Below are positions 1,455 to 45,055 of a stretch of DNA of 64,000 bases, piece by piece. Position 1 is the first letter of the stretch; the number at the start of each line of letters is the position of its first letter. Source of the DNA: Macrostomum lignano (taxonomy: Eukaryota); contig NIVC01001003.1 in assembly GCA_002269645.1 (NCBI GenBank), forward strand, positions 275,863 to 339,862, in the 5' to 3' direction. The notes below the pieces were generated by a model. The model worked only from the letters and a program-made list of their open reading frames with translations, was not told where the DNA came from and ran no database searches. A program made the position numbers and the translations under genes.

Positions 1455-4400
1455 ATGCCGTTGGTATTACGTGTTGTTATGCCACTGTTGCTGTGTGCAT
1501 TGTGCTCCGACTGCCTGCCGGCTAGCAACAGCATGTACAGCCATCAGTCTGCGGACTGTGCCAGTGCCGACTTGGTGAGATGCTCGACATATTTTATCTA
1601 TATTTGCGCGTATAAAACTATTCATGAAATTGGAAAAAATGATCAGCTGGTTCTACCATAGATCCATAGATTTCACTGGTTACATACATGTAGTGTTTGA
1701 GGTTAAAGAGGTTAAAGCAATATGTTGGAAGATACACTCGTTAAAAGAGTGGATGGAGGCAGGGGCGGACCCAGGGGGGGGGGGAGCAAGGTGACCTCGG
1801 CCCCCCTCAGCCGTGGCCAAAAAATTAGCTCATGCTTTTTGGCCTGTAATTATACAAGGTCTCTTTTCTAATATTGATCCGAGGGCGATGGAAGATAGAG
1901 TGATATAAGGGTAAATGGATCATATTGAGGGCAGACAGTGGAGACAGAGGTGTCAATGGAGAATGGTACAACTGATATGAATGAATGAGTTATAAAGAGG
2001 ATAGCACTCCGTCACTCCGTCACTGCCTCACTCCGTCACTGCCTCACTCTGTCACTGCCTCACTCCGTCACTGCCTCACTCCGTCACTGCCTCACTCCGT
2101 CACTGCCTCACTCCGTCACTGCCTCACTCCGTCACTGCCTCACTCCGTCACTGCCTCACTCCGTCACTGCCTCACTCCGTCACTGCCTCACTCCGTCACT
2201 GCCTCACTCCGTCACTGCCTCACTGCCTCACTGCCTCACTCCGTCACTGCCTCACTCCGTCACTGCCTCACTCCGTCACTGCCTCACTCCGTCACTGCCT
2301 CACTCCGTCACTGCCTCACTCCCTCACTCCGTCACTGCCTCACTCCGTCACTGCCTCACTCCCTCACTCCGTCACTGCCTCACTCCGTCACTGCCTCACT
2401 CCGTCACTCCGTCACTCCCTCACTCCGTCACTGCCTCACTCCGTCACTGCCTCACTCCGTCACTGCCTCACTCCGTCACTGCCTCACTCCGTCACTGCCT
2501 CACTCCGTCACTGCCTCACTCCGTCACTGCCTCACTCCCTCACTCCGTCACTGCCTCACTCCGTCACTGCCTCACTCCGTCACTGCCTCACTCCGTCACT
2601 CCCTCACTCCGTCACTGCCGTACTCCGTCACTGCCTCACTCCGTCACTGCCTCATTCCCTCTCTCCGTCACTCCGTCCCTCAGTCATTCCGTCACTCCCC
2701 CAACCCGTCACTTCCTCACCCTGTCACTCAGTCACTCCTTCATTCCCGCAAACTGTCACTGCCGAATATTGCTATAGCAAGTCACAATCCCGAATGCAAC
2801 TGCCCTGAGGCCTCGCATTGGTACTAAAAAAATATCCCAGAGCCGATTCTGGACTTCTCTGTTGGCGTACGAGGCTTAATTTTAATTGTCGTTACGCTAA
2901 AAACTTCGAAAATTACAGTTGTTAATTTAGCCTATCTTGATCTTTTTCTTTCGCTATATAAATTAGTTCGCTTCAATATACGCTCGTAGCAGTACAGTAG
3001 TCCTAGATGGTAGAAGCTTCATGCAGCTGTCATTCAATCATCGTCATTATAGTGCAGCAACATGTCATGGTCGCTAAAAAGTTTATCTACAGTAGTTGAC
3101 TACAAAATTTCGCTAGCAGAAAACAGCTCGCGATTCAACTTAGTGGCTAAGCACTAAACACTGGGGGGAGGGGGGTTCGGTCTTGTGTTTCCCACGTTCG
3201 GGCGAGCTGTGCCTGACAAAGAAGGCATTTTATTCGGTACAACAAACAAATGCATGTAAATGAAGACAAGGAACTGAGGAGGATATTTGGCGTCAGCCTG
3301 TCCCGCCGCCTCTCATCCCAGCAAAGATCCCAAGCAGAGATAGATTTCCCAATTGTCCCCACTCGCAACCAAGGGCTCCGGTTTTGTAGCTTCATGGACT
3401 GCTAATAAGGTACAATATGGATCGGAGGTCACTAGAGCAATTTTTGGGAACCATTCACAATGTATGAGTATTGAGTAAGTAAATAGGCAATGAATGGGAT
3501 ACTTTACAACATTATAAATTATGTTTAGTAAGTAACTTTCACAACCCATGGACAGATAGAAGCTTAAAAATGCAGAAATTTCTCAGATTAAATAGTAGAT
3601 TGTGTCGATGGTTTTGGAGACAGACAATGGTAGATTGTGTCCATGGTTTTGGAGACAGACAATGGTAGATTGTGTCTATGGTTTTGGAGTCAGACAATGG
3701 TAGATTGTGTCCATGGTTTTGGAGACAGACAATGGTAGATTGTGTCTATGGTTTTGGAGTCAGACAATGGTAGATTGTGTCTATGGTTTTGGAGACAGAC
3801 AATGGTAGATTGTGTCTATGGTTTTGGAGTCAGACAATGGTAGATTGTGTCTATGGTTTTGGAGACAGACAATGGTAGATTGTGTCTATGGTTTTGGAGA
3901 CAGACAATGGTAGATTGTGTCTATGGTTTTTGAGGCAGACAATGGTAGATTGTGTCTATGGCTTTGGAGGCAGACAATGATAGATTATGTCTATGGTTTT
4001 TGAGGCAGACAATGGTAGATTGTGTCTATGGTTTTTGAGGCAGACAATGGTAGATTGTGTCTATGGTTTTTGAGGCAGACAATGGTAGATTGTGTCTATG
4101 GTTTTGGAGACAGACAATGGTAGATTGTGTCTATGGTTTTGGAGGCAGACAATGGTAGATTGTGTCTATGGTTTTTGAGGCAGACAAGGATTGATATTTC
4201 ACGAGTAGAGAGAAGCCACTAATCTTGTCTATGACAAAACCATATACACAAGCACATTGTCTCATGAATGTTGCGTTGAATAATGAGCGTAGATCCTAAG
4301 ACAATGATCCATGCATGACAACATAAAATAAGTGATGAGTTGCTTTTTCTCAAAATTAAATACTAGTAGAATATCCACCTTTTTGTACCTGGTACATTGT

Positions 4401-7400
4401 TGACTGCTGCCTCCAGTCCAGATGCTTTGCGCCAGGAGTCCATGCTTCCTTTCCCACCGGACCGGATCCGGATATGACACTAATACTGCAGCAAAGCACA
4501 CCCCATGTTAATATTTCATATATAGTAAGCGAAGCCCTCAAAGTCTGTCTGTAAGCAGATTTTGAGACTAGACTGAGAATTAATATTTAAAGAAGAATTA
4601 GTGCGACTATTACATTAGAAAGGGGCCGGTGTGTCTGAACCCCCCCATCTTGACAAGCATGACAAGACAAATTAACAACATGTAGTCATGCCAGTCCTAG
4701 AGCAGACAGGGTGGAAGCGAGAGCAGAATCTGAGAAATGCTTAATACTCGCACAGTTTATATGACGGTTGTTAAACAGTGAGGCCGTAAAATGAGTAATT
4801 TTGTAGCGTAAAATCAATATCAAAATTTCATAAACTATAAATTATCACAAACCTGAAATATCACAGACCCGAAATATCACAAACCCGAAATATCACAAAC
4901 CTGAAAAATCACGGACCTGAAATATCACAGACCTGAAATATCACAAACCTGAAATATCACAAACCCAAAATATCACAAACCTGAAATATCACAAACCTGA
5001 AATATCACAAACCCGAAATATCACAAACCCGAAATATCACAAACCTGAAATATCACGGACCTGAATATCACAGACCTGAAATATCACAGACCTGAAATAT
5101 CACAGACCTGAAATATCACAAACCCGAAATATCACAAACCCGAAATATCACGAACCCGAAATATCACAAACCCGAAATATCACAAACCCGAAATATCACA
5201 AACCCGAAATATCACAAACCTGAAACATCTCAAACCCGAAATATCACAAACCCGAAATATCACAAACCCGAAACATCTCAAACCCGAAACATCACAAACC
5301 TGAAATATCACAGACCTGAAATATCACAAACCTGAAATATCACAGACCTGAAATATCACAAACCCGAAATATCACAAACCCGAAACATCTCAAACCCGAA
5401 ATGCGAGCTATCATAACTCCGAAAAGCAAAATACCGTTGGGTGTTGCTGGAACTTTCGGAGTTATTTCAGCAAAAGACTGAAAAAAACAGAGCGAAAACA
5501 CTTATCAGCCACGTGTTGGTTGCATCGCAAGTTTTCTATTCTGAAGCAACTACAATCTCTTTCTTGCACCCACATGCCACTGTCCCGGAAAAGATCGACA
5601 GTTATGGCGTGTTCTGCGCGTTATTTTGCATCACGTGCTCTAACTTAAAAGAAAGGTAAAAGTAAATTATGCTGCAGATTTTATGCTGCTGTTTAAACAA
5701 CAGATCAAACTCCGGTGTAAACTACAGTTGACTCTTTAAGCACAGCACAGATTTCATCGATTAGATCTGCTCCTACACAAACCTCAGCAGCGAACGGAAA
5801 TGAATTCACGACACATGCCCTAACCCCCAACCTTGCTCTCCTTCAGACCCAGCACGGGCTTGGCACAGTGTCCAGGCACGCGGAAATGTGCAGCGAAATG
5901 CCTGGTAAGCCAGCGCGATTTCAATAACATGATTTTTTGTATTGAGGGTCAAATTTGTTGAAGGGAAAGTGGCTGGGGGTAGCCAGCAGCAGCACTTCAA
6001 TGCGTTAATCCAGGGTTTAAGCATCGGACTTTATCGATAAGCTCGATCTAAAAGTAATCTAGGCAAGGGTCAGCACTCTCCACAGCCTCCCTGTACAACT
6101 GCTTAGAGCCAGCTGCTCAAATGCACTCTCCCACAGCCTCACTGTACAACTGCTCAGAGCCAGCTGCTCAAATGCACTCTCCCACAGCCTCCCTGTACAA
6201 CTGCTCAGAGCCAGCTGCTCAAATGCACTCTCCCACAGCCTCCCTGTACAACTGCTCAGAGCCAGCTGCTCAAATGCACTCTCACACAGCCTCCCTGTAC
6301 AACTGCTCAGAGCCAGCTGCTCAAATGCACTCTCCCACAGCCTCCCTGTACAACTGCTCAGAGCCAGCTGCTCAAATGCACTCTCCCACAGCCTCCCTGT
6401 ACAACTGCTCAGAGCCAGCTGCTCAAATGCACTCTCCCACAGCCTCCCTGTACAACTGCTCAGAGCCAGCTGCTCAAATGCACTCTCCCACAGCCTCCCT
6501 GTACAACTGCTTAGAGCCAGCTGCTCAAATGCACTCTCCCACAGCCTCCCTGTACAACTGCTTAGAGCCAGCTGCTCAAATGCACTCTCCCACAGCCTCC
6601 CTGTACAACTGCTTAGAGCCAGCTGCTCAAATGCACTCTCCCACAGCCTCCCTGTACAACTGCTTAGAGCCAGCTGCTCAAATGCACTCTCCCACAGCCT
6701 CCCTGTACAACTGCTTAGAGCCAGCTGCTCAAATGCACTCTCCCACAGCCTCCCTGTACAACTGCTTAGAGCCAGCTGCTCAAATGCACTCTCCCACAGC
6801 CTCCCTGTACAACTACAGCGTGCAGACGGCTCAGTCAGCTGACAGCCTTCAGAGCACCGAGTTCTCAGACACTGCCAGCGGCCTCATTATCGGCTCCTTC
6901 GAGCTGGAGCACTGCCTGACTCCGTCAGACTCGCTGCTCATCGTTCTGGGCGAAGCCTCCGACTCGATGGGCGCCTCTGAGCACAGATGTCAGAGGCTGA
7001 CCGTCTGCAACCAGATGGCCGACGGGAAGCGGCGACGACTGCGGCTTCAACTGAGCCTCCGTCCGACCAGATCCTACACGATGAAGGTCTTCAAGCTGGC
7101 CAGCGGGTCCAGGCTGTGCGAGCAGCCCCGAGTTCGATTCTTCTTCACCAGGTCGGCGGGCGACGACCGGCCGCTGGTGCAGCTGGCGGCGCGACGCTGC
7201 GGCGCCTGTGGTGACGATGGCAGCGACTTCCGCTGCAACATGACGGCCTACCTGCGGAGCGGCTGGGTTGGTGGGCTGCTGCTAAAGCTGACCGGAGTTT
7301 TAGGCGATCAAAGTGACTGGATCAAATTTCCGGCCAATCAGAGTCAGCGGGTGTCGGTGAGCTCACGGAGACCGTTTTGGGCGAGCAAACGGCGGGAGTA

Positions 7401-9286
7401 ATGATTTAGTACGACTCACGTAGAATACTATAGCATTAAAATACTGTATTTTTTGCTTAAGGCAGCCTTCAAAGATTCTAAGAAACGAAATATTCTAGCC
7501 TTCTAAGATTTTCTAAGACACGTATGTTGCAGTCTTGAAAATTTTTATAAGAAAATAAATGTTGCAGTCTTGAAAGATTTTCTAAGAAACACAAATTCCA
7601 GTCTTGAAAGATTTTCTAAGAAACTAAATATTCCAGCTTTCAAATATTTTTTAAGAACGAAACGTTTTGACTCAAATGCAATTGTAAATTCAAACTAACT
7701 TTTTAAATTGCTGCAGAATTCAAACAGTTGGATTAAGGCAAACCTCTCCATGCAGATCCGAAGTTGGCAGCTCACCTATCATGTGAGTAATGTTTTTAAT
7801 AATTTGTAACACAGCTGAGCATATTTCGTAGAACTCAGAGCCTTCCAATTTAATTTCAATCCAGTTTCGCAAAACTGCCGGATCGAGACGGACGATTTCC
7901 AGTGCAAGGCGAAGCATCTTTTCATTAGGATTCAATGGTAATCCACTCTGTGATTGACCTCATTGACACTGTGATTGACCTCACCGACACTCTGATTGAC
8001 CTCACCGACACTCTGATTGACCTCACCGACACTCTGATTGACCTCACCGACACTCTGATTGACCTCACCGACACTGTGATTGACCTCACCGACACCCTGT
8101 GATTGACCTCACCGACACTTTGATTGGCCTCACCGACACCCTGTGATTGACCTCACCGACACTGTGATTGACCTCACCGACACCCTGTGATTGACCTCAC
8201 CGACACTTTGATTGGCCTCACCGACGCTCTGATTGACCTCACCGACACTCTGATTGACCTCACCGACACTCTGATTGACCTCACCGACACTCTGATTGAC
8301 CTCACCGACACTGTGATTGACCTCACCGACACTGTGATTGACCTCACCGACACTTTGATTGACCTCACCGACACTGTGATTGGCCTCACCGACACTCTGA
8401 TTGACCTCACCGACACTCTGATTGACCTCACCGACACTCTGATTGACCTCACCGACGCTCTGATTGGCCTCACCGACACTCTGTGATTGACCTCACCGAC
8501 ACTCTGATTGACCTCACCGACACTCTGATTGACCTCACCGACACTCTGATTGACCTTAACGGTGATTGACCTCACCAACACTCTGTGATTGATCTCAATG
8601 ACACTCCAAATTCCTCTGACTAATTATTTACAGACAAGTCGCTCCGCTCGCCGACCCTCTGTCAGCCCTCTGAGCCGCTGGCAGTCTGCCCGAGGCCGCT
8701 GTTGCCGCCGACAGTGGGCCAGTGGAGCGCGCCTTCGCCCTCCCAGTCGGCCAGAGGGTCTGTCAATCGATCAACAATCAGCGACACAGCGCCCGCAGTT
8801 TTAAGCTGGGCGCTTCCTCCGGCGCTAGTCCTGGCGCTCTTCCTGGCGCTCTACCGGGCGCTCTATGCTCAGCGCAATTGCGGCGATAGCAACACGAGAA
8901 AACTTGTCCTGCTAGTGCTTCCAGAAGCCGGAAATCCAACGACCCGTCAGCTTATTCGCCGGCTGCCAGCGGCCCCGGCCGGAGTCGAGATACGTCAGGT
9001 GGTCGGCCTGAGCAAGCTCAACCGACAGCTAATTGGCAGCTCGTGCCTCGTCATCTTCCTGAGCTGGGACTCAAAGTTCGACAGCTTCCAAGCTGGCAGC
9101 CTGTCGGATGCAGCCGGGAGGAGTCTGAGAACGGTGCTGCTGACTGAGAAGCACCGGATGCTGGGAGCCTTCATCAACTCGGGAGCTGGACCGCCTGCTG
9201 ACTCGATCTGGTCCGGCCTCGATGCCAGGATGCTGGGACTGGACGATGGAGCGGCTTGGAAAGATCTGCTGCTCCAGGCTGCTTGA
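1455..9286 (+). CDS. Receptor paralogue A: type I single-pass membrane protein with Cys-containing ectodomain and TIR/SEFIR-like cytoplasmic domain
   Basis: Hand model with compatible phases: 1455-1574 (signal peptide MPLVLRVVMPLLLCALCSDC; donor gtgaga), 5751-5904 (donor gtaagc), 6800 to about 7356 (donor position uncertain), 7717-7782, 7832-7937, 8634-9286. TM helix VLSWALPPALVLALFLALY is followed by RKLVLLVLPE..GVEIRQVVGL..LVIFLS..LLTEKHR. Exons 3-6 align with paralogue B. The TIR/SEFIR assignment comes from the alternating beta/alpha pattern only. Confidence 0.7.
2005..2740. repeat. 16-bp minisatellite (CTCCGTCACTGCCTCA)n, intronic
   Basis: Direct tandem repeat. It explains ORF 1985-2827. 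Confidence 0.95.
3596..4190. repeat. 35-bp minisatellite (TAGATTGTGTCTATGGTTTTGGAGACAGACAATGG)n
   Basis: About 17 tandem copies with a 35-bp period. Confidence 0.95.
4841..5400. repeat. 17-bp minisatellite (AAACCCGAAATATCACA)n
   Basis: Tandem copies. A few related monomers also occur at about 19270-19335. Confidence 0.95.
6073..6812 (+). repeat. 51-bp tandem array at the intron/exon boundary of receptor A
   Basis: Unit ATGCACTCTCCCACAG|CCTCCCTGTACAACTGCTCAGAGCCAGCTGCTCAA. There are 15 CACAG acceptor-like sites (6085, then 6136 to 6799 every 51 bp). Confidence 0.95.
7950..8600. repeat. 21-bp minisatellite (GATTGACCTCACCGACACTCT)n filling an intron of receptor A
   Basis: Starts about 12 bp after the donor at 7938 and ends about 30 bp before the acceptor at 8633. 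Confidence 0.95.
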
Positions 9287-9489
9287 GAACGGATGGTAGC
9301 TTTTGGTGGGTCTCAGGTTATTAGACGAGCGGGAATCGTTTTTAGAAATCATGGACCCGTGGGTTACGTTGCTCCCTAGCGTGTTTTAGCAACTTTAGAT
9401 TTTTTTTATGGACTAAAAGTAAAATATTAAATATCTTCATTTGGAAAATTCACGAGGTCCGACAAGCCAAATACGTCATGCCATGTACA

Positions 9490-9855
9490 CTGGGAATCGC
9501 CCATGTACACTAAGAATCGCCCATGTACATTGGGAATCGCCCATGTACATTGGGAATCGCCCATGTACATTGGGAATCGCCCCCCCACCGAATGACACTG
9601 TGGGAATCGCCTCCCCCCGATACACATTGGGAATCGCTCCAACCGATATACATTGAGAATCGCCCCCCCCTGCCCCGATATACATTGGGAATCGCCCCCC
9701 CCCGGCCCCCACCGATGTACATTGGGAATCGCCCCCCCCACCGATGTACATTGGGAATCGCCCCCCCACCGATGTACATTGGGAATCGCCCCCCCACCGA
9801 TGTACATTGGGAATCGCCCCCCCCCACCGATGTACATTGGGAATCGCCCCCCCCC
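9490..9855. repeat. 20-30-bp minisatellite (GGGAATCGCCC(n)ACCGATGTACATT)n
   Basis: Tandem copies with a variable C-run. Confidence 0.9.
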
Positions 9856-10389
9856 CATTTACGCCTCTGCCTCCTTGTCCAAACGGTGGCCTCAATTCGC
9901 CATTGATGTCAACCCCTCCAATTAAATTTCAGATCAAGCTTGAAAAGTTTGGCAAACTTTTGTGCGGTCAACTGATCCCGCGATCACTCACTGATGTACA
10001 AAGTTGACACCTGCAGCTATCATTATAAAAGTTCATACGCATCGAGTTAAGATTTAGGTCAGGAGGCAAAGAACATTCATTAGTCAATTTCTGTGTTCAA
10101 TTCCTATTTTGAAAAGCCATTATTATTTCATAGTTTATTAGTCTGTCATTTTACGCGTATTTTCGAATTGATTTCGCCAAATACTCTACTAGTAGTCACT
10201 GTACGTTCAGTGCCAAAATGTTATTGAGAAGAAATTTGTAAATAAATTGAAATAAATTTTTTAATGCTTGATTTTTGTCCCTTGTTGAAGTTTGGGCAAT
10301 GCAATAATAAAATACAATGATTATTTATTTAAATTATACGCTTGTAAATACTTGCTGTAAATCTGCAATAATGACCTCTAGGTACTTAC

Positions 10390-10640
10390 AGTTTGACACC
10401 CAGTTACTTTATGGCTCACTCTGACACCCGGTTAGTGTACTTTTATAGTTTACTCTGACACCCGGTTAGTGTACTTTTATAGTTCACTCGGACACCCGGT
10501 TAGTGTACTTTTATAGTTCACTCGGACACCCGGTTAGTGTACTTTTATAGTTCACTCGGACACCCGGTTAGTGTACTTTTATAGTTCACTCTGACATCCG
10601 GTTAGTGTACTTTTATAGTTCACTCCGGACACCGGTTAAT
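10390..10640. repeat. 34-bp minisatellite
   Basis: (GACACCCGGTTAGTGTACTTTTATAGTTCACTCG)n, about 6-7 copies. Confidence 0.9.
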
Positions 10641-11802
10641 GCAGTATTATTGTGTGTCTCACTCCAAAACCAGTTATTATAACAATAATTATAACATATG
10701 AGGCTATACTTCAAGTCATGGTAGTATTGACCTAATCAGCGAAGGTGCAAATTAGGACCCAAAATAGTTCTTTTTAATTGTTCTGCACTTTAATCAGGGA
10801 CAACTGATGCAGGACGCTTCCGTACATGTATTTCTTCAGAGCATATAGTATAGCCCATGTACGTGCATACTCGTACATGTATAGACAAACCTAAGGTCAG
10901 TGTTTTAGAGTCGCAAAAATTGAGTTATTTCGCTGCTATGCTTCTGCTTTTCATACATGTGGATCTAATTTGTTTCAGATCTTTAGCGGAAATCGCACCC
11001 CAACACGTGTATTCTGTTGTGTATTAAAAGGATTGACTGGAAAGTAAAACGGCCCTTTTCAGGGCCACCTTAAGCCACAGATACTAGAGTACACTAAGTA
11101 GATGAGCCACTCAGGCAAAAAATAAGCCTTCTGTTTAATAAAGGCAGCTGAAATGACTTTGAGTTCAGAAGCCCAAGCTTGCAGGCGTAAACAGCTTGCT
11201 AATTGGTTCAGCCATGATCTACATTAGCCAGTCCAACTGAAATGTACATGGCAGCTTTAGGCTGGAATTCCGAGAAAGGCAATAAAAATTGGGACGGGCA
11301 GGGGTTAGTGAGGAAAGGCGCGGTTGGAGGGTTTAAGCTACGCTGCTACGGGTAAGAGTCAATTAATGAGCTTTTGGTGTTAAAAATACATTAAAATCCT
11401 TCTGTTTAACGTACTACTGAACTGAAAGTAGCTTGCACGCAAATGTGCTGAGTGGCCCTAATCTATTTTATTCTAGTACATTATCTGTGCCCTAAACGAA
11501 CATAGCGGTTGAGGCTAAAAAGAGTGGGGGCACAAAATATGCGAAATATGGAGAACACGATGATGCGGTTCTGAATGCTACACTCGTAAAAAAACCGCGC
11601 GGAGTAAGAATATCAATCTCTCTGTTCCTACAGTGCCCGTCTGGCACCAACCAGCGTAAACAGCCCTAGGCTTGCTCTTTCTTTTGAGTCGTTTCCTTCG
11701 TGCAACAGATCATACTCTTCCAGTTTAACCAGAAGTATAAAGCCGCAGACCAATAAGTATAACAATGAGTAAGCACATTCAACAACTTTCAATCAAGGAC
11801 GA

Positions 11803-12302
11803 CTTAAGTAGGACAGGAAACCTCGTTTCTTAGAAAATTTTAGAAGGCAGGTTTTTCCGAAAAAATACACTACGGAGATAGGAAGTTTTCATTTTTTTCA
11901 GCACAAAAAAATTGCTATTGCTTTTGATATGAGGCAGATCCAGTGTTCATCTTTGTTTGTTTGTTACAGAGTCAGCTAAGAATGACAAAATAACATCATA
12001 AAGTTAAAGAGCAGACCTGTGCCATCTCAATAGTTTTCAGGCACAAGACACGCGCAAATGTATGTAGAATAAAAAATTCACATAGCATCCTAATTTTCTG
12101 AACGAGAAGCTTATTGAATATCGATAGAGCAATAAGAAAGACACAACATAGCAAAAGATGAACACTGGATCTGCTTCCTATCAAAAGCAAAAGCAATTTT
12201 TGTGCTGAAAGAATGAAAACTTCCTATCTCCGTAGTGTATTTTTTCGGGAAAGCCGGCCTTCTAAATTTTTCTAAGAAATGAGGTTTTTTTGTCCTCCTA
12301 AG
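11803..12302. mobile_element. MITE-like foldback with inverted arms of about 150 bp
   Basis: 11803-11955 is the diverged reverse complement of 12152-12302 (e.g. aatacactacggagataggaagttttcatt versus aatgaaaacttcctatctccgtagtgtatt). The spacer is about 200 bp. No clear TSD. Confidence 0.65.
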
Positions 12303-12379
12303 ACTGGCAAATCTCTCAATTAGATGCATTTTTACAGTGCCGGATGATTTTAAGACTGGTCCAGTTCCATTTAATTCTA

Positions 12380-12903
12380 AACTGTCAGCTTCCACTGCTT
12401 CTGTGCTGAGTCAGCTGATGATGGTAGGCATGACAAGGACAGTTGAATGGTGGCATCCTGCTGCTTCAGATTCGGATTGACAGACTGGAGAATCCCTCCT
12501 CCGGCATGCACCAGCAGCTGCCTAAATGCTGAGCGAAACTTACGAGTATTGCCCAGTCTGAGTCCGTGGCTTTCCTGTACTTGCTGCAACATACACACAT
12601 ATTTACATTCTTCTGTTCGGCCACACAAATGTTCCCAGGGACTGCCACTGCATGGTTTCGAATCAGCTTCAACATGTGCGACACATCCAAGAAGGCTGAA
12701 ACCTGAATGCCAGGATCTCAGCGCTATCAGTCACTTTTTTCTCATTACTTTAATTGTCCGTTGGAAAAGTCTGGAAGGACTCCGGGATTCCGGATACAGC
12801 GGGAGGCGTCGCGTCGCCGCTAAGTAAGGAGGGACACTCCCGCCACCACCAGCGGCATCGCTGCATTGTTTGAACAGCCAAACAGCACAGCAAAAGCTGT
12901 CAT
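12380..12903 (-). pseudogene. Internally deleted THAP/P-element (THAP9-like) transposase remnant
   Basis: Minus strand reads MTAFAVLFGCSN (THAP-like start), SFQTFP (THAP FxxFP-like) and VSAFLDVSHMLKLIRNH, matching the P-element transposase D-x-x-H-x-x-K motif. Stops and frameshifts are present and no TIR pair was found. Confidence 0.45.
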
Positions 12904-13626
12904 GACTTCCTCTTCTTTTCCCGGCAATTTAGAAGATTCAGATTGTTATTTCATTTCATTTAAGTAATTATATTTCCAATAACTTTGCTTGTCACTTAAA
13001 AACTAGTATAGCATTGCTATTTTGGTCTCTAGTGCCACTTTAATGTAGATGTTAATTTAAATAAGGGCAGACAGCTAAAGAAGGGCCAGGGCCAGTCTTC
13101 CCCAGGCCACTGATATCGATCGTTTTGGGATGGAGTAGAGGGGACCATTTTTTGCTTGGTCATTTTTTACAAAAAAAACAGCCCCAGGCAAAGCAATGCT
13201 GGATGCGCAGTTTAGTTATACTTATTGTTCTGAGGCTGGCGCTGCCCTGCAACATCATTTCGAGAAGAACATTTCTTGGAAATAAACCCAACTACACTAA
13301 AAAAATTATTCACTGCGCCATAGCAGCGTACACTGAACCACGGCCGGAGACAGTAAATGATTGTACATTTGCATGTACACACCGGACAGAAATGTATACG
13401 TACATCGAACCATTCATTTCTATAGTTTACTAGTTTACTGGCCAATTAGAGTTAATAATTAATTATAGCCGACAATTGGTTGAGGTCAGCATAAAATAAC
13501 ATACATATATTAGAAACCAAAACTTAATTATTACAAGCCTCTCGATAATTATCTCTTGATAAGCAATCCTCGTTTCTCAGTAAGTTCCAGTTAACAAATT
13601 AAAACGAAAAGATTTTGCTCTTCGAA

Positions 13627-19622
<5,996 letters not shown>

Positions 19623-19779: not shown

Positions 19780-22700
19780 TGAGTGAGGCAGAAGCGGACA
19801 CAAAGCGAGTGGACACAAACGGGCAAAGAGTGAGGCAGAAGCGGACACAAGCGGTCAAGGAGTGAGGCAGAAGCGGACACAAACGGGCAAGGAGTGAGGC
19901 AGAAGCGGACACAAACGGTCAAGGAGTGAGGCACAAGCGGACACAAACGGGCAAGGAAGAGTGAGGCAGAAGCGGACACAAACGGGCAAGGACGAGTGAG
20001 GCAGAAGCGGACACAAACGGTCAAGGAGTGAGGCAGAAGCGGACACAAACGGGCAAGGAAGAGTGAGGCAGAAGCGGACACAAGCGGTCAAGGAGTGAGG
20101 CAGAAGCGGACACAAACGGGCAAGGAGTGAGGCAGAAGCGGACACAAACGGTCAAGGAGTGAGGCACAAGCGGACACAAACGGGCAAGGAGTGAGGCACA
20201 AGCGGACACAAACGGGCAAGGAGTGAGGCAGAAGCGGACACAAACGGTCAAGGAGTGAGGCAGAAGCGGACACAAACGGGCAAGGAGTGAGGCACAAGCG
20301 GACACAAACGGGCAAGGAGTGAGGCACAAGCGGACACAAACGGGCAAGGAGTGAGGCAGAAGCGGACACAAACGGTCAAGGAGTGAGGCACAAGCGGACA
20401 CAAACGGGCAAGGAAGAGTGAGGCAGAAGCGGACACAAACGGGCAAGGACGAGTGAGGCAGAAGCGGACACAAACGGTCAAGGAGTGAGGCAGAATCGGA
20501 CACAAACGGGCAAGGAAGAGTGAGGCAGAAGCGGACACAAACGGGCAAGGAGTGAGGCACAAGCGGACACAAACGGGCAAGGAGTGAGGCACAAGCGGAC
20601 ACAAACGGGCAAGGAGTGAGGCAGAAGCGGACACAAACGGTCAAGGAGTGAGGCACAAGCGGACACAAACGGGCAAGGAGTGAGGCAGAAGCGGACACAA
20701 ACGGTCAAGGAGTGAGGCACAAGCGGACACAAACGGGCAAGGAAGAGTGAGGCAGAAGCGGACACAAACGGGCAAGGACGAGTGAGGCAGAAGCGGACAC
20801 AAACGGTCAAGGAGTGAGGCAGAAGCGGACACAAACGGGCAAGGAAGAGTGAGGCAGAAGCGGACACAAGCGGTCAAGGAGTGAGGCAGAAGCGGACACA
20901 AACGGGCAAGGAGTGAGGCAGAAGCGGACACAAACGGTCAAGGAGTGAGGCACAAGCGGACACAAACGGGCAAGTAGTGAGGCACAAGCGGACACAAACG
21001 GGCAAGGAGTGAGGCAGAAGCGGACACAAACGGTCAAGGAGTGAGGCAGAAGCGGACACAAACGGGCAAGGAGTGAGGCACAAGCGGACACAAACGGGCA
21101 AGGAGTGAGGCACAAGCGGACACAAACGGGCAAGGAGTGAGGCAGAAGCGGACACAAACGGTCAAGGAGTGAGGCACAAGCGGACACAAACGGGCAAGGA
21201 AGAGTGAGGCAGAAGCGGACACAAACGGGCAAGGACGAGTGAGGCAGAAGCGGACACAAACGGTCAAGGAGTGAGGCAGAATCGGACACAAACGGGCAAG
21301 GAAGAGTGAGGCAGAAGCGGACACAAACGGGCAAGGAGTGAGGCACAAGCGGACACAAACGGGCAAGGAGTGAGGCACAAGCGGACACAAACGGGCAAGG
21401 AGTGAGGCAGAAGCGGACACAAACGGTCAAGGAGTGAGGCACAAGCGGACACAAACGGGCAAGGAAGAGTGAGGCAGAAGCGGACACAAACGGTCAAGGA
21501 GTGAGGCACAAGCGGACACAAACGGGCAAGGAAGAGTGAGGCAGAAGCGGACACAAACGGGCAAGGAAAAGTGAGGCAGAAGCGGACACAAACGGGCAAG
21601 GAAGAGTGAGGCAGAAGCGGACACAAACGGGCAAGGAAGAGTGAGGCAGAAGCGGACACAAACGGTCAAGGAGTGAGGCAGAAGCGGACACAAACGGTCA
21701 AGGAGTGAGGCAGAAGCGGACACAAACGGTCAAGGAGTGAGGCAGAAGCGGACACAAACGGTCAAGGAGTGAGGCAGAAGCGGACACAAACGGGCAAGGA
21801 GTGAGGCAGAAGCGGACACAAACGGTCAAGGAGTGAGGCACAAGCGGACACAAACGGGCAAGGAGTGAGGCACAAGCGGACACAAACGGGCAAGGAGTGA
21901 GGCAGAAGCGGACACAAACGGTCAAGGAGTGAGGCAGAAGCGGACACAAACGGGCAAGGAGTGAGGCACAAGCGGACACAAACGGGCAAGGAGTGAGGCA
22001 CAAGCGGACACAAACGGGCAAGGAGTGAGGCAGAAGCGGACACAAACGGTCAAGGAGTGAGGCACAAGCGGACACAAACGGGCAAGGAAGAGTGAGGCAG
22101 AAGCGGACACAAACGGGCAAGGACGAGTGAGGCAGAAGCGGACACAAACGGTCAAGGAGTGAGGCAGAATCGGACACAAACGGGCAAGGAAGAGTGAGGC
22201 AGAAGCGGACACAAACGGGCAAGGAGTGAGGCACAAGCGGACACAAACGGGCAAGGAGTGAGGCACAAGCGGACACAAACGGGCAAGGAGTGAGGCAGAA
22301 GCGGACACAAACGGTCAAGGAGTGAGGCACAAGCGGACACAAACGGGCAAGGAGTGAGGCACAAGCGGACACAAACGGGCAAGGAGTGAGGCACAAGCGG
22401 ACACAAACGGGCAAGGAAGAGTGAGGCAGAAGCGGACACAAACGGGCAAGGAAAAGTGAGGCAGAAGCGGACACAAACGGGCAAGGAAGAGTGAGGCAGA
22501 AGCGGACACAAACGGGCAAGGAAGAGTGAGGCAGAAGCGGACACAAACGGTCAAGGAGTGAGGCAGAAGCGGACACAAACGGTCAAGGAGTGAGGCAGAA
22601 GCGGACACAAACGGTCAAGGAGTGAGGCAGAAGCGGACACAAACGGTCAAGGAGTGAGGCAGAAGCGGACACAAACGGTCAAGGAGTGAGGCAGAAGCGG

Positions 22701-22830
22701 ACACAAACGGTCAAGGAGTGAGGCAGAAGCGGACACAAACTGGCAAGGAGTGAGGCAGAAGCGGACACAAACTGGCAAGGAGTGAGGCAGAAGCGGACAC
22801 AAACGGGCAAGGAGTGACGCAGAAGCGGAC
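19780..22830. repeat. 32-bp satellite (GAGTGAGGCAGAAGCGGACACAAACGGGCAAG)n with higher-order duplications
   Basis: About 3 kb array. Identical variant strings recur at offsets of 786 and 888 bp. Confidence 0.97.
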
Positions 22831-23274
22831 ACAACACATCGAAATTTTCAAAGAAATCGACACTCAAATCGGCAAAAATTCCGCCACGGAGCAGCGGAGC
22901 ATGGCAAAAAAATAACAAAGAACACTTGCTCTCCTACCGAAAATATTTTAATTGTATTGTTTTATATCAAACCAAATATATATTATACACTTAACGAATG
23001 CTGTGATGTAAAAAAACAAAATACTTTTATATTTTTTATTTAAAGTTAAAAAGAACGTTACGGCGACAGTTCTCTATTTATGACAGTATAAATGAGTCAA
23101 ATGACAGCTAGTGTGAGTGACAGCTATAATGTCCGTGTATTGATAGCATCGCTAAAATAACGTGCAAGCCCATAAAGGTGTAAGACGTAATCATCATTCA
23201 TACGTTAGCTTTTAGTTATGTTTAATAGCTGTCTACGACAGGCGATTGAATAAGGAGAAAAGACTGAGAAACAT

Positions 23275-25059: not shown

Positions 25060-28000
25060 TCAGTGGCTCCCGTTAGCGAGCTTCTCAACGCAATCCACGG
25101 CGGCAAGAACCCAAGCCATGGGGCGGTCCCGCTTTGCCAGCAGTTCGTTGAGCTGCGTTGGAAGGCAATGTGTTGGATATTGTATGCCATTCTCTAACCT
25201 CTGAATCAGTGACTAGATCTTTAAGATTTATTGACTAGATCAGCATGAGCAATGACCAGATCAGCATAAGCAGCATTAGCAATGACTAGATCAGCATGAG
25301 CGATGACTAGATAAGCATGAGAAATGACTAGATCAGCATGATTAATGACTAGATCAGCATGAGCAATGACTAGATCAGCATGAGCAATGACCAGATCAGC
25401 ATGAGCAATGACTAGATCAGCATGATCAATGACTAGATCAGCATGAGCAATGACTAGATCAGCATGAGCAATGACCAGATCAGCATGAGCAATGACCAGA
25501 TCAGCATGCCAGACTTACCTGACCAGACCGGACCACGACTCCGTGAGCGGCGGTCAGCTTGGCCTTAGTGGCGGCGATGCCATCCGGCATGACACCGCAG
25601 CAGGCGTCCTCAAGCAGCGCGGTGCGGTAGCCCAGCTCCTGGGCGTGGGCAGCCGTGGATCCGACGCAGACATCTGTGGCCAGGCCGCAGACGATGAGGT
25701 CAGAAATTCCCAGTTTGCTCAGTCTGTCGTGCAGGTCCGTCTTCTTCAGCTTGTTGTTGTCCCAGAATGCCGAGTAGCTGTCTATATCCGGGTCCGTGCC
25801 CTTGTACACCTTGGTGTGGTTGCCAGCCAGCTGCAGGAGGGACGAGACGGACAAAACTGTTCCAGGTGGACACAATCAGTTCCAAACAGACACAGTCAGT
25901 TCCAAACAGACACAGTCAGTTCCAAACAGACACAGTCAGTTCCAACACAGACACAGTCAGTTCCAACACAGACACAGTCAGTTCCAAACAGACACAGTCA
26001 GTTCCAAACAGACACAGTCAGTTCCAAACAGACACAGTCAGTTCCAAACAGACACACTTAGGTCTAAACAGACACATTTCCAAACAGACACAGTCAGTTC
26101 CAAACAGACACAGTCAGTTCCAAACAGACACAGTCAGTTTCAAACAGACACACTTAGGTCTAAACAGACACATTTCCAAACAGACACAGTCAGTTCCAAA
26201 CAGACACAGTCAGTTTCAAACAGACACACTTAGGTCTAAACAGACACATTTCCAAACAGACACAGTCAGTTCCAAACAGACACAGTCAGTTCCAAACAGA
26301 CACAGTCAGTTCCAAACAGACACAGTCAGTTCCAAACAGACACAGTCAGTTCTAAACAGACACAGTCAGTTCCAAACAGACACAGTCAGTTCTAAACAGA
26401 CACAGTCAGTTCCAAACAGACACAGTCAGTTCTAAACAGACACAGTCAGTTCCAAACAGACACAGTCAGTTCCAAACAGACACAGTCAGTTCCAACACAG
26501 ACACAGTCAGTTCCAAACAGACACAGTCAGTTTCAAACAGACACAGTCAGTTCCAAACAGACACAGTCAGTTCTAAACAGACACAGTCAGTTCCAAACAG
26601 ACACAGTCAGTTCCAAACAGACACAGTCAGTTCCAAACAGACACAGTCAGTTCCAACACAGACACAGTCAGTTCCAAACAGACACAGTCAGTTCTAAACA
26701 GACACAGTCAGTTCCAAACAGACACAGTCAGTTCTAAACAGACACAGTCAGTTCCAAACAGACACAGTCAGTTCCAAACAGACACACTTAGGTCTAAACA
26801 GACACATTTCCAAACAGACACAGTCAGTTCCAAACAGACACAGTCAGTTCCAAACAGACACAGTCAGTTTCAAACAGACACAGTCAGATCCAAACAGACA
26901 CAGTCAGATCCAAACAGACACACTTAGGTCTAAACAGACACATTTCCAAACAGACACAGTCAGTTCCAAACAGACACAGTCAGTTCCAAACAGACACAGT
27001 CAGTTCCAAACAGACACAGTCAGTTCCAAACAGACACAGTCAGTTCCAAACAGACACAGTCAGTTCCAAACAGACACAGTCAGTTACAAACAGACACAGT
27101 CAGTTCCAAACAGACACAGTCAGTTCCAAACAGACACAGTCAGTTCTAAACAGACACAGTCAGATCCAAACAGACACAGTCAGTTCCAAACAGACACACT
27201 TAGGTCTAAACAGACACAGTTCCAAAGAGACACAGTTACAGATGGACACAATCAGTTCCAGACGAACATAATCAGTTCCAGACGGACACAAACAGCTCCA
27301 GATGGACACAAACAGCTCCAGACGGACACAAACAGCTCCAGACGGACACAAAATATGAAATACACCAACCTTAAGCTCCGAGTGCAGTTCAGCGCCTGAA
27401 GAATTTTGCACGCAATGCCGAGGCCACATTATCTGCTCGATGGGTCCGTAGGCCTTCGTCTCCAGCACCACAACATCGTTGAGGCCCACTTTGGCTGCGT
27501 CCTTGATCTGCAGAGTGGAGGCCGGCCTGGTTTGATGTAACTTTTAGATTAAAACTTTTTGATGCAAGAGAGGGACACTGAGACAAGATAAAGGCGGACA
27601 CTGAGACAATATAGATAGGGATATTGAGACTAGATAGAGGGACACTGAGACAAGATAGAGACGGATACTGAGACAAGATAAAGGGACACTGAGACAAGAT
27701 AGAGGGGGATACTGAGACAAGATAGAGAGGGACACTGAGACAAGATAGAGAGGGACACTGAGACAAGATAGATAGGGATATTGAGACAAGATAGATAGGG
27801 ATACTGAGACAAGATAGAGGCGGACACTGAGACAAGATAAAAATACACTGAGACAAGATAAAAATACACTGAGACAAGATAGTGACGGACACTGAGACAA
27901 GAAAGACATCTATCAGACTGATAAAAATCCCATTGTTGAGGCGCTCTCCCACCTTAGACTTGTCGCTTAGCTTCCGCTTAGCCAAGTTGTCCAAAAACGA

Positions 28001-37370: not shown

Positions 37371-40300
37371 TCACCGTGAAACATCCTCATTGAAAATCAT
37401 ATTAGCCAAATCGCTAGACAATATCTTTAGCGCTGCCTCGTCATCATCCAGCTTCTTGGCCTCGAAACCCGACCAGGCCAAGTTCGCTGGCAGATCGTCA
37501 GTCTTCTCGTTGACGAAGATTCCTTGAAATCGATGCTTCTCAGTTAGCAAGAGGGTTGTCAAGCTGTGTCTGGATCCATCTGAGAGGGTGTCGATCTGCA
37601 ATAAGGGAAATAAAAACGATTACAGGTCTTTTTCGTTGTCCTTGTCTGTCATTTGTTATTGAAGTTTTCCATCCGACAGTACAAGTACCACTAGGAACAC
37701 TTCGTTATATAAGGACGTTACACTCTCGATTCGTGTAAAAATAGTTGAAGGCCGATTTTCGTTCTCGTATACATTATTATAATATTAGAGGAGAAAGACT
37801 TTAAAGCATAAAGACCAAATTATGCGGGTTCTGTATATGATCTCCAGACTCTGGTATATTTTCAGAAACGTCACAAAATTTTGCATTCACATAAATGTGC
37901 GTAAGATTTTCAGCTACTTATTAATTTTACTTTCTAAACTTGAAGATTTGGATAGCTACCAGACGCCCAAAAATAGGGTGTCTCCATTGTACAGGATTTT
38001 CTTGCATCTATACATCTAGTGGGAAACTAAACTAACTGGTTTGCTTGGTAGTAGGGGACAAAAATCTGAACAATTTGGCGAAAAAATCAACATTCTACAT
38101 GCAATCGATTCGGAGATACAGGCATTTAAACAATCGGCCTTCAACTGTTTTTGCACGATTTGCAAGTGTTGCGTCCTTCAAGTCTAGTAGTCCTTGCGAC
38201 GGTAACCATGAAGTACATGTAAGTTCCCTTTGAATTTGTTCTGAATCAGTTTCCCTGCTAGATAATTTGACATTATTTGAGTCTCCATGCCCGTACATGT
38301 ACATCTGGGAAGAATCGATGCGAGAGAAAATTATAACACCCATGTACTTGCCCGAAAGCTATCAAAAGCCGAATCGGCGCTCATAAACACGACAAGATTC
38401 GAACTTCCGACCAATTGTCGCGTCAGACTTTGCAGACCAACAACCTTTACCACCTCGACGCCAGCGGCAGCCGCTGTCAGCGCGTGCTGGAACCGCCGCA
38501 CAGTTTTCCGGCTAATGGCGTTGACATTTTCCAGTTCGGGCAGCACTAGGAGAATGAGCTTCCGTGCATTTCTCAGCCGACGATGACAGTACACGATCAG
38601 CATCAATACTGACACTGGCACTAGCAATACTACGACAAACGCCAGCAAAATTACGGTTGTAGCAAATGTTTCAACTCTGTCAGCATAACCAGTTTGGTCC
38701 AGGGACATCAGCTTAGCCGGACAAAGTTTGCAGCTATCGAATAGAGCCTCATCAAGATGGCAAAGCTGCGGATGAAGCAGCTTCTCTGCCGAGCCGTCTG
38801 CGTTACGTTTGCAGGGGATTAGCGTTAATCCATTAGGTTGTATGAGTTGAAATATTGAATTCCTCCCACTAAAAGACTCACCTGACCCGCGGATTGCGAA
38901 AAACATTCGCCTACTCGTACAGCATTTTCGACTGCTATTTGCAAACCTTGGACGGAACTGAAAATCAAAATTGGCAATGATTGGCATTCGAAAACCTACT
39001 CTAAAAGAACCATTTTTACGTGAAAGAAACGTGAGACAGGTACACACATCAATCCGAATGAGAAGGCCAGCGGCAGGTGATATTCGAACTACGACCGACT
39101 GTTTGACCCACAGATTGCGTCTCTGAAGCCAACATGAGTGCGATTGGATGTACAATCGGTTGGGTGGAATTGAAAAGCTTTTTTGAGCGAGATAATTTCC
39201 GAGTTAATACGCTCGTGCGAGCACTTACATAAAAAATATCTGAGACATTCTGGAGATACTGCACCAAATCAACGGTGCTACTATAAAAAGCTACCCGCAC
39301 CAGGAGCCTTGATGGACTCACCATTTTGTCGCTGAACTCGTAGCTGTCAGCGCTCCAAACAGACGGTTCATTCAGAGTCAGGCGCAGCCCGCCAACCCAG
39401 CCGCTCCGCAGGTAGGCCGTCATGTTGCAGCGGAAGTCGCTGCCATCGTCACCGCAGGCGCCGCAGCGTCGCGCCGCCAGCTGCACCAGCGGCCGGTCGT
39501 CGCCCGCCGACCTGGTGAAGAAGAATCGAACTCGGGGCTGCTCGCACAGCCTGGACCCGCTGGCCAGCTTGAAGACCTTCATCGTGTAGGATCTGGTCGG
39601 ACGGAGGCTCAGTTGAAGCCGCAGTCGTCGCCGCTTCCCGTCGGCCATCTGGTTGCAGACGGTCAGCCTCCGACATCTGTGCTCAGAGGCGCCCATCGAG
39701 TCGGAGGCTTCGCCCAGAACGATGAGCAGCGAGTCTGACGGAGTCAGGCAGTGCTCCAGCTCGAAGGAGCCGATAATGAGGCCGCTGGCAGTGTCTGAGA
39801 ACTCGGTGCTCTGAAGGCTGTCAGCTGACTGAGCCGTCTGTACGCTGTAGTTGTACAGGGAGGCTGTGGGAGAGTGCATTTGAGCAGCTGGCTCTAAGCG
39901 GTTGTACAGGGAGGCTGTGGGAGAGTGCATTTGAGCAGCTGGCTCTGAGCGGTTGTACAGGGAGGCTGTGGGAGAGTGCATTTGAGCTGTGCATTTGAGC
40001 AGCTGGCTCTGAGCAGTTGTACAGGGAGGCTGTGGGAGAGTGCATTTGAGCAGCTGGCTCTGAGCGGTTGTACAGGGAGGCTGTGGGAGAGTGCATTTGA
40101 GCAGCTGGCTCTGAGCGGTTGTACAGGGAGGCTGTGGGAGAGTGCATTTGAGCAGCTGGCTCTGAGCGGTTGTACAGGGAGGCTGTGGGAGAGTGCATTT
40201 GAGCAGCTGGCTCTGAGCAGTTGTACAGGGAGGCTGTGGGAGAGTGCATTTGAGCAGCTGGCTCTGAGCAGTTGTACAGAGAGGCCGTGGGAGAGTGCAT

Positions 40301-40832
40301 TTGAGCAGCTGGCTCTGAGCGGTTGTACAGAGAGGCTGTGGGAGAGTGCATTTGAGCAGCTGGCTCTGAGCGGTTGTACAGGGAGGCTGTGGGAGAGTGC
40401 ATTTGAGCAGCTGGCTCTGAGCAGTTGTACAGGGAGGCTGTGGGAGAGTGCGTTTGAGCAGCTGGCTCTGAGCGGTTGTATAGTGAGGTTGTGGGAGAGC
40501 AAGATAGAACATGAAAACCATATAAAAATCGGTGGCTCCAATCGGCAAAAACCGATGTCCATGCTAAAATATAAAATTGTTACCGTCCATTTTTGGGCAG
40601 TTAGTCTCGTGCAGTGAGTCAATTGGACCAAATTGTATTTTTTTAGGAATCTGAAATTCATTACGGTGCACTTTCAGTTCAAAAGTAAATGGATGCGTTG
40701 AGGTTTTTATACCAGTGTTTGCATTGGACCTACCTCCAGGTTGCAGTCTGCAGTTGAAACTTCAGTGCTAGAGACACCAACTATCATGATGAAGGCGGTA
40801 CAGCAAGCAGACAGTATATTGGCATTCGACAT
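37371..40832 (-). CDS. Receptor paralogue B: type I single-pass membrane protein with TIR/SEFIR-like cytoplasmic domain
   Basis: Model: 40832-40734 (signal peptide MSNANILSACCTAFIMIVGVSS; donor gtaggt), repeat-containing exon ending 39229 (gtaagt), 39122 to about 39046, 39000-38882, 38797-38352, GC-AG intron, 37595-37371. TM VILLAFVVVLLVPVSVLMLIVYC is followed by RKLILLVLPE..GVEVVKVVGL..LVVFMS..LLTEKHR, homologous to paralogue A. Confidence 0.7.
39850..40500 (-). repeat. 51-bp tandem array, inverted homologue of 6073-6812
   Basis: Same unit with CGC/TGC variants and a 13-nt insertion at 39988-40000. Confidence 0.95.
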
Positions 40833-44500: not shown

Positions 44501-45055
44501 AGTAGCTTACAATGGCTCCAGAATTTCCGAGATGCAGAAGGACAAGTCGCCCGCTGGCTAGAGAAGCTTGCAGCGTTTCACTATCGGATCGTACACAGAC
44601 CGGGGCGTAACCATGGAAACGCAAATGCTTTATCGAGGAAACCAAGTCGACGACATCCAGGCGCTTCGACTTGTCCGTCCTGTGCCTGCAAAACAACGAT
44701 CCTGAACGCGATTGGTTTCGAATCGACGTCACCAGCGGACCTGGCACGTGAGCAACGCAACGATCCTGACCTGGCAGTTGTGCGTGAAGCGCTGAGGAGC
44801 AATAGAGAACTCGCAAGGGAAAAACTATAAAGAGCTGGAGCCTGACCGCAAGAAGCATCTGGGCCCGTAAGGAAGACTTGTTGCTTCAAGAAAAGGTGCT
44901 CTTCGTCAAGGACCAAAGACGAGGGAGCAACAGAACTTAATCCTGCCGGTCGGTTTAATGTCGGAAACTTTGAAGAATCTGCATCAAGGTGTGGGAGGGG
45001 GCCATGCCGGTTTCTTGAAGACAAAGTTCAAAGTTCAGCAAAAATTTTGGCCTTA
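41590..45055 (+). mobile_element. Decayed Ty3/Gypsy LTR retrotransposon internal region (gag-PR-RT-RNaseH, start of IN)
   Basis: Gag (..ELAKDRFLKG), knuckle TCFRCGKTG, protease TLIDSGAS, RT YMDD and KCHF, RNase H FILDTDGS..VIAYASKTL..ERNY..ELLAVV, LRTDHSSLQWL..ARW, and integrase zinc-finger start LHQG..GGH.G. Many stops and frameshifts, and no flanking LTRs found. Confidence 0.95.

Follow-up and report, generated by a model that had tools for sequence, protein, structure and literature searches.

Two paralogous genes of Macrostomum lignano encode predicted single-pass, receptor-like membrane proteins with a constrained cytoplasmic tail

The window analysed here is a 64,000-nt stretch of Macrostomum lignano DNA (contig NIVC01001003.1 of assembly GCA_002269645.1, positions 275,863 to 339,862 of the forward strand). 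It contains two paralogous genes, A (1455-9286, + strand) and B (40832-37371, - strand), whose products combine a signal-like N-terminus, a Cys-containing ectodomain, one transmembrane (TM) helix and a cytoplasmic tail. Among the segments of the two proteins that diverged long ago, the tail is under the strongest constraint, and the family is restricted to Macrostomum lignano in the databases searched. We regard as the best explanation, and as a fairly probable one, a Macrostomum-restricted receptor-like family that signals through this constrained tail. A preliminary description of the locus had seen in the tail a TIR- or SEFIR-like fold and in the overall layout a resemblance to IL-17 receptors. 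Judged by sequence, the tail does not appear as a member of the SEFIR or TIR family, and on present evidence A and B form an uncharacterised orphan membrane-protein family, possibly a degenerate IL-17 receptor-like one.

Results

Shared architecture of the A and B proteins

Each protein has only two hydrophobic segments, one signal-like at the N-terminus and one TM segment. A type I topology (signal peptide, one TM helix, cytoplasmic C-terminus), as in IL-17 receptors, is indicated by the number of these segments, by the N-x-S/T sequons (five in A, three in B), every one of which falls in the stretch enclosed by the two, and by the basic residues that come after the TM segment. This agrees with the preliminary description, which had moreover recognised no leucine-rich repeat (LRR) or immunoglobulin (Ig) motifs; Pfam likewise gave nothing of the kind at E<10. 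The ectodomain carries conserved cysteines and was predicted by AlphaFold2 (AF2) as all-beta, with ~14 strands over about 230 amino acids (aa), at a predicted local distance difference test (pLDDT) score below 50. Ahead of the TM helix, both proteins have a Pro/Ser-rich stalk with a C..E...CP motif. The tails comprise 140 aa in A and 158 aa in B and hold a conserved cytoplasmic domain of ~135-150 aa in both, in which RKL(V/I)LLVLPE stands about 12 residues past the membrane.

Matched peptides of the two proteins are NSWIKANLSMQI and NLWVKQSVVVRI, FRKTAGSRR... and FRPRFANSSRK..., and PTLC..E...CP and PQLC..E...CP. The tails have RKL.LLVLPE, GVE...VVGL..L.RQL.GSS.LV.F.S.DS.FDSF and LLTEKHR in common and are 55% identical, with long invariant motifs. 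When the last exon of gene A was searched against the window by tblastn, the two tail exons of gene B were found at E=4.6e-19 and 3.7e-10, with no further match below E=0.4, a similarity well past what chance would give. Thus two paralogues with matched exon peptides can be assembled as had been proposed: both are in frame with GT-AG introns, and all peptides and tail motifs are present, save that the leading Q of the proposed peptides QFRK and QFRP belongs to the intronic acceptor 'cag' and the exons begin at F.

Constraint on the tail and gene conversion in the ectodomain

Nonsynonymous divergence (dN) between A and B, estimated by the Nei-Gojobori method with synonymous divergence (dS) saturated, is 1.0 in exons 1-2, 0.87 in the rest of the ectodomain and 0.84 in the TM segment, and falls to 0.37 in the tail, so that the tail conservation seen earlier is confirmed (0.37 vs 0.84-1.0 elsewhere). 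A low tail dN with saturated dS indicates that the tail has been under purifying selection in both lineages, and this speaks for a folded functional domain and against gene B as a long-dead pseudogene. In our view, A and B are very probably type I membrane glycoproteins with a folded, functional tail.

At the nucleotide level the two genes resemble each other in a single block only, A 6073-7279 and B 40499-39384. On the A side (6073..7279, + strand) it comprises a 51-bp minisatellite (6073-6814) and the 5' 465 nt of exon 3, and on the B side (39384..40499, - strand) the corresponding minisatellite (39849-40499) and the 5' part of exon 3. The exon-3 part has 4 mismatches in 465 nt, and identity drops abruptly at 7280, inside the exon. 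The dS of 0.045 in this block, against saturation in the rest of the A/B comparison (Nei-Gojobori), identifies it as a recent gene-conversion tract over an old duplication. The tract is a tidy case of minisatellite-associated conversion homogenising one ectodomain module between old paralogues.

The minisatellite itself (6073-6814, + strand; 39849-40499, - strand) is open in the exon-3 frame and has the acceptor ctcccacag/CC in every unit. Were splicing to use an acceptor further upstream, the ectodomain would gain 17-aa units (SLYNC[S/L]EPAAQMHSPTA) in frame. As coding sequence, however, the array was rejected, because it is skipped by splicing in two public models. That it is open counts for little as evidence, since the B array stays open in that frame despite a 13-bp indel that shifts the unit register.

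Distribution of the family

A HMMER profile was built from A, B and GenBank PAA52225.1 (a public counterpart of gene A, see below) and scored exhaustively against 1.84 billion representative proteins. Only the cluster of PAA52225.1 itself was found, with no relatives outside M. lignano among these representatives; the suspicion that the family is lineage-specific was therefore well placed. In the annotated M. lignano proteome, A-type models only are present. A word-indexed search with an alignment of stalk, TM helix and tail returned nothing and missed PAA52225.1 as well, most likely since its candidate list had been flooded by TM words.

Gene A and its public counterparts

Positions 1455 and 9286 are exactly the ATG and the stop codon of gene A, which consists of six exons with AG/GT boundaries, all on the + strand, and has an in-frame coding sequence of 1527 nt for 508 aa. 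Exon 1 (1455..1574) carries the start codon and the signal peptide (MPLVLRVVMPLLLCALCSDC...) with its hydrophobic N-terminus, and ends in phase 0 at a GT donor; exon 2 (5847..5904; TQHGLGTVSRHAEMCSEMP) ends in phase 1. Exon 3 (6800..7356) encodes the main beta-rich, Cys-containing part of the ectodomain, for which the AF2 secondary structure is all-beta at low confidence. Its acceptor lies within the last 51-bp minisatellite unit: the one consistent with the frame of gene A is the ctcccacag/CC of that unit, not the later 'ctacag'. Exons 4 (7717..7782; NSNSWIKANLSMQIRSWQLTYH) and 5 (7865..7937; FRKTAGSRRTISSARRSIFSLGFN) follow. Exon 6 (8634..9286) contains the Pro/Ser-rich stalk with a CxxxxxxxxC motif, the TM helix (8798-8866, residues 347-369), the conserved cytoplasmic domain (8867-9283) and the stop codon.

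To call the family unrecognised, as had been done, is too strong, because public annotation already includes gene A, as a protein without characterisation, and one fused UniProt model bears the automatic name 'SEFIR domain-containing protein'. The GenBank entry PAA52225.1 (BOX15_Mlig029866g3; UniProt A0A267DSM1), a hypothetical protein of 458 aa, is 98% identical to gene A and spans exons 2-6, its model beginning at a Met internal to exon 2. It reads ...MCSEMPASLYNYSVQTAQ... and ...LTYHFRKTAG...SLGFNDKSLRS..., matching the gene A model exactly. The exon 1-2-3 joins, among them that of exons 1 and 2, are contained in the WormBase-derived model UniRef A0A1I8H6B0, so that the two entries together reproduce the model junction for junction. 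UniProt A0A1I8IVD9 is a further counterpart; across these entries identity is 98% and the joins agree. None of them is characterised, and their automatic names disagree. The GenBank annotation of M. lignano was built from a genome-guided RNA-seq transcriptome with StringTie/TACO, TBONE and TransDecoder (PMC5730564). Since this annotation carries them, the gene A joins are supported by transcripts; of the expectation that transcripts join these exons, the part concerning gene A stands (PAA52225.1 being RNA-seq-derived), and gene B has no such support.

A locus on NIVC01003280.1 of the same assembly runs collinear with that of the window; identity is 94-99%, and the main difference lies in repeat copy number. 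At 5686-13169 of that contig, the A unit (exon 2 to stop; window 5458-9273) is present as a tandem duplicate, and the window has one copy; of the two copies there, the first seems to be without exons 4-5. The model A0A1I8IVD9 fuses both tandem copies by read-through. Within the window, minisatellite arrays occupy all introns of gene A but the short intron 4 (2012-2728, 3591-4187, 4843-5402 and 7951-8556, their units measuring 16, 35, 16 and 21 bp and recurring 17-46 times per array), and three of these lie in intron 1.

Gene B

Gene B was located by tblastn of the exon peptides of gene A against the whole window, and lies outside the interval 1455-9286 that the preliminary description had given for the family. 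On the - strand from 40832 to 37371, seven exons with GT-AG introns join in frame to encode 513 aa. Exon 1 (40734..40832), with start codon and signal peptide (MSNANILSACCTAFIMIVGVSS...), was tentatively placed from its position and phase and from a weak resemblance to A (..ADC..). Exon 2 (40584..40650; IPKKIQFGPIDSLHETNCPKMD) has the phase of gene A exon 2. In exon 3 (39322..39863), the first 465 nt past the minisatellite are 99% identical to gene A exon 3. Exons 4 (39048..39122; RRNLWVKQSVVVRISPAAGLLIRID) and 5 (38882..38957; FRPRFANSSRKCCTSRRMFFAIRGS) lead to exon 6 (38340..38797), which encodes the stalk, the TM helix (38666-38589, residues 331-356) and the first half of the cytoplasmic domain; its weak donor, GTGTTA, was picked by phase. 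The second half of the domain, including LLTEKHR, and the stop codon are in exon 7 (37371..37595). The intron between exons 6 and 7 has no equivalent in gene A.

Just upstream of the gene B start, the window holds a long terminal repeat (LTR) retrotransposon pol remnant with broken frames (~41700-45000, + strand), in which RT_RNaseH_2 was matched at 44140-44502 (E=3.7e-29); flanking open reading frames (ORFs) are protease- and integrase-like by eye.

Discussion

Proposed mode of action

In the reading that we favour, A and B are paralogues in convergent orientation, separated by ~28 kb, and belong to a family found to date in Macrostomum lignano alone. Each protein would consist, in this order, of a cleavable signal peptide, a ~300-aa beta-rich ectodomain with conserved Cys and N-glycosylation sites, a Pro/Ser-rich stalk, the TM helix and, starting ~12 residues past the membrane, an alpha/beta domain that is compact and 135-150 aa long. 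The most likely role would be that of a cell-surface receptor, with an extracellular ligand bound by the ectodomain and the signal passed on by the tail through protein-protein contacts with a cytosolic partner, presumably driven by oligomerisation as in TIR/SEFIR receptors. The N-terminal ectodomain module is kept near-identical in A and B through gene conversion, and the membrane-proximal, TM and tail parts are old and divergent. With a shared ectodomain module and divergent tails, A and B could see one ligand with different outputs, or they could form a heteromer.

Tests of the cytoplasmic domain

A considerable number of results weigh against a receptor signalling through a tail of TIR or SEFIR type. 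Pfam searches at E<10 with full-length A and B, three tails and A0A1I8H6B0 matched, with a single exception (DUF7767), no family whatever, SEFIR, TIR and the IL-17 receptor ectodomain families included; specifically, the TIR profiles (PF01582, PF13676 and relatives) gave no match on tails or whole proteins, and the double fibronectin-III (FN3) ectodomain families (IL17_R_N, IL17R_fnIII_D1/D2) gave none either. DUF7767, which appeared on the B tail only (E=0.023, 34 residues), was below the cut-off and absent from A, and was taken as a chance match. Since defence proteins of TIR and SEFIR type are described in bacteria, the tails were also searched with PADLOC, whose TIR/SEFIR defence models gave no match. 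In profile searches of PDB sequences with the whole protein and with the tail, the SEFIR chains 4NUX, 3VBC and 9OT1 and any TIR chain were unmatched; the sole PDB sequence matches, Protein A helices in the last helix region, were rejected as a compositional or repeat artefact.

For direct comparison, a SEFIR alignment of 10 sequences was assembled from PDB-verified human and mouse IL-17RA and IL-17RB, an IL-17RD sequence and relatives with a PF08357 domain from the database. This alignment is thin and vertebrate-only, as all database matches were vertebrate. When the tail alignment was compared with it by hhalign, the probability was 0.14%, and global mode was worse; the only segment aligned paired L.RQL.GSS.LVIFLS of the tail with W..Q....KIIFL.S of SEFIR. 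With a hidden Markov model (HMM) from the same vertebrate-only alignment, the real tails (A, -4.6 bits) did not score above 1000 shuffles. Most of the invariant residues of the SEFIR alignment (Y8, F22, F25, L26, C30, G48 and W52) have no counterpart in the tail. The negative profile result is weak, because the profile is vertebrate-only and thin. The family match proposed in the preliminary description nevertheless failed throughout, in Pfam, PADLOC, PDB sequence searches, hhalign and the HMM comparison with shuffles.

Structure prediction, which had been suggested as a check, did not help the assignment. The AF2 models were of low confidence, with pLDDT of 37.5 for PAA52225.1 alone and 46.9 when the tail was modelled from an alignment of three sequences, and Foldseek of both models against the PDB gave nothing at E<=0.001 (best E 0.37 and 0.02, template-modelling (TM) scores 0.1-0.38). 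On the question of a five-stranded sheet in the tail, the best Foldseek E-value was 0.37, obtained with a low-confidence model. Because of this low model confidence, the Foldseek results are regarded as noise, including the top matches to DHFR, meprin MAM/TRAF and viral jelly rolls (TM-scores 0.1-0.38); ectodomain matches had TM-scores <=0.16 on AF2 models with pLDDT below 50. Where the tail begins, the two runs agree in giving beta(KLVLLVL)-alpha-beta(VEIRQVVG)-beta(CLVIFLS), and the domain-only run has a short helix ahead of the third strand. They differ in the C-terminal half, which is helical in one and has two short strands in the other. Hence, of the fivefold beta-alpha pattern described before, the initial beta-alpha-beta-beta is recovered in both runs and the remainder is not consistent between them.

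The sole support for the assignment is an automatic name in UniProt, and the names of near-identical models disagree. The fused model A0A1I8IVD9 is named 'SEFIR domain-containing protein'; A0A1I8H6B0, with the same tail truncated at the C-terminus, is a 'Cadherin domain-containing protein'; and A0A267DSM1/PAA52225.1, with a complete tail that differs from the fused model only at the extreme C-terminus (LLLQAA vs LLLELFEQ...), is 'Uncharacterized/hypothetical'. Three conflicting names on near-identical sequences suggest borderline profile hits, and the SEFIR name is probably one of these, to be taken as a lead and not as a test. Gene B contributes further points on the negative side: its exact sequence is not in a collection of 15 billion proteins, a word-indexed homology search with it found just two proteins, both A-type M. 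lignano models, and it has no transcript or annotation support in the public sets searched.

Comparison with known receptor families and alternative readings

Among the alternatives, A and B may be genuine but extremely degenerate IL-17 receptors, with a double-FN3 ectodomain and a SEFIR tail, that bind an IL-17-like ligand of the cystine-knot type and recruit a TRAF adaptor or one of the CIKS/Act1 type; we consider this unlikely, and think it possible but doubtful that the tail is a degenerate SEFIR/TIR-type domain at all. Like the IL-17 receptors (IL-17RA-RE, SEF/IL-17RD and ILCR-1/2 of C. elegans), A and B are predicted type I single-pass proteins with an all-beta ectodomain of ~300 aa without LRR or Ig motifs (~14 predicted strands) and with a compact alpha/beta domain near the membrane, so that architecture and sizes fit. 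There is also a short resemblance at the first strand (K-hydrophobic x5-P-x-E), where K-V-L-V-V-Y-P-S-E of IL-17RB stands against R-K-L-V-L-L-V-L-P-E, and at the third strand, in the segment paired by hhalign, besides the SEFIR name of A0A1I8IVD9. Moreover, the FN3 and SEFIR domains of many invertebrate IL-17 receptors are reportedly degenerate past detection by domain models (PMC11087794). However, every statistical test of this reading failed (Pfam SEFIR and IL-17 receptor ectodomain families, hhalign, HMM against shuffles, Foldseek); the SEFIR profile, being thin and vertebrate-only, gives a weak negative, yet a negative. Unlike in IL-17 receptors, neither sequences nor profiles of A and B show significant similarity to SEFIR or IL-17 receptor FN3 domains, and the tails are without most of the residues that do not vary in the vertebrate SEFIR alignment. 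The tail domain starts only ~12 residues past the TM helix and is shorter than SEFIR, with 135-150 aa in all and a still shorter conserved core, against roughly 150-160 aa (about 210 with the IL-17RA extension). The name itself is offset by the GenBank near-twin with a complete tail, 'Uncharacterized' in UniRef, and by the near-identical model named for cadherin.

With TIR receptors (TLR, IL-1R and the Hydra HyTRR type), A and B share a single-pass layout and, in the cytoplasm, a predicted beta-alpha-beta domain that presumably delivers the output. Unlike them, A and B have no Pfam TIR match, box 1/2/3 motifs and the BB-loop signature are unrecognisable, and the ectodomain is without LRR or Ig. 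Flatworms reportedly lack TLR and IL-1R orthologues and retain MyD88, TRAF6, p38 and orphan TIR proteins (PMC7958881), and because the receptors are missing while MyD88 and TRAF6 are kept, a divergent receptor would fit a known gap. It is conceivable, though decidedly unlikely, that the tail is an undescribed signalling module, either a branch of the STIR superfamily past the reach of current profiles or an unrelated alpha/beta fold, and that the family is the missing flatworm receptor feeding MyD88/TRAF6-type machinery. Literature on SEFIR or IL-17 in flatworms, planarians and Macrostomum, and on Mlig029866, yielded nothing specific, and flatworms go unmentioned in those portions of the IL-17 evolution literature covered by a keyword check.

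It is quite improbable that only gene A is functional and that gene B is an unexpressed or decaying duplicate, its exon 3 lately overwritten by conversion from A. Such a state would agree with the absence of B from all public protein sets searched, with the weak exon-6 donor (GTGTTA), where a retained intron would end translation two codons on, and with the LTR-retrotransposon remnant less than about 1 kb upstream of the start codon. Yet all seven exons of B are open, with canonical splice sites, start and stop present, and the low dN of the tail relative to other segments requires long-lasting constraint in both lineages. The absence from GenBank annotation is weak evidence, because transcripts overlapping repeat annotations were purposely excluded from it (PMC5730564).

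The least probable, and very improbable, reading is that A and B are lineage-specific membrane proteins without a signalling role, in adhesion, matrix or mucosal surface, with a novel non-STIR tail that serves e.g. as a cytoskeletal or trafficking anchor: flatworm genomes have many orphan genes, no signalling-domain homology was found (Pfam, the search of 1.84e9 representatives, hhalign, SEFIR HMM), one public model carries the cadherin name and a 17-aa in-frame repeat rich in Ser, Pro, Thr and Cys could enter the ectodomain via alternative acceptors, but Pfam Cadherin (PF00028) is unmatched on A, B and A0A1I8H6B0 even at E<10, and the tail rather than the ectodomain is the most constrained old segment, which is more typical of a receptor with a fixed output module and an evolving ligand-binding part.

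For a membrane receptor acting ahead of MyD88, the TRAFs and p38 in flatworms, a Macrostomum-restricted single-pass family with a strongly constrained tail close to the membrane is a reasonable candidate in a species with working transgenesis and RNA interference. If the tail were a degenerate SEFIR/TIR domain, the known sequence space of that superfamily would be extended; if not, A and B would simply add to the orphan families of membrane proteins, and their interest would be local.

Other features of the window

The window is dense in minisatellites. The largest of its many arrays spans 3 kb (19811-22834) with a 32-bp unit in about 92 copies, and shows a strong purine/pyrimidine strand asymmetry with AT skew up to 0.8. 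Two exons of the isochorismatase family (PF00857) lie on the - strand at 25501-25875 and 27389-28246 (E=7.6e-17 and 4e-4), and the intron between them is filled with 20-bp and 23-bp minisatellites. By eye, the ORFs at 30-413 and 15805-16450 (both + strand) resemble remnants of Tc1/mariner transposase (..HDNARPH.., N-terminus like a helix-turn-helix); Pfam gave nothing for them at E<0.01. Two long ORFs on the + strand (48601-49116 and 50147-51265), coiled-coil-like and with a hydrophobic C-terminus, are probably exons of one gene and matched no significant Pfam family (FapA, E=2e-4, being below the cut-off). A Pro-rich ORF at 14986-15705 (+ strand) ends in a CCCH-like motif; on its own it matched no Pfam family, and it is syntenic with a 610-aa zf-CCCH gene downstream of the A-type gene on NIVC01003280.1.

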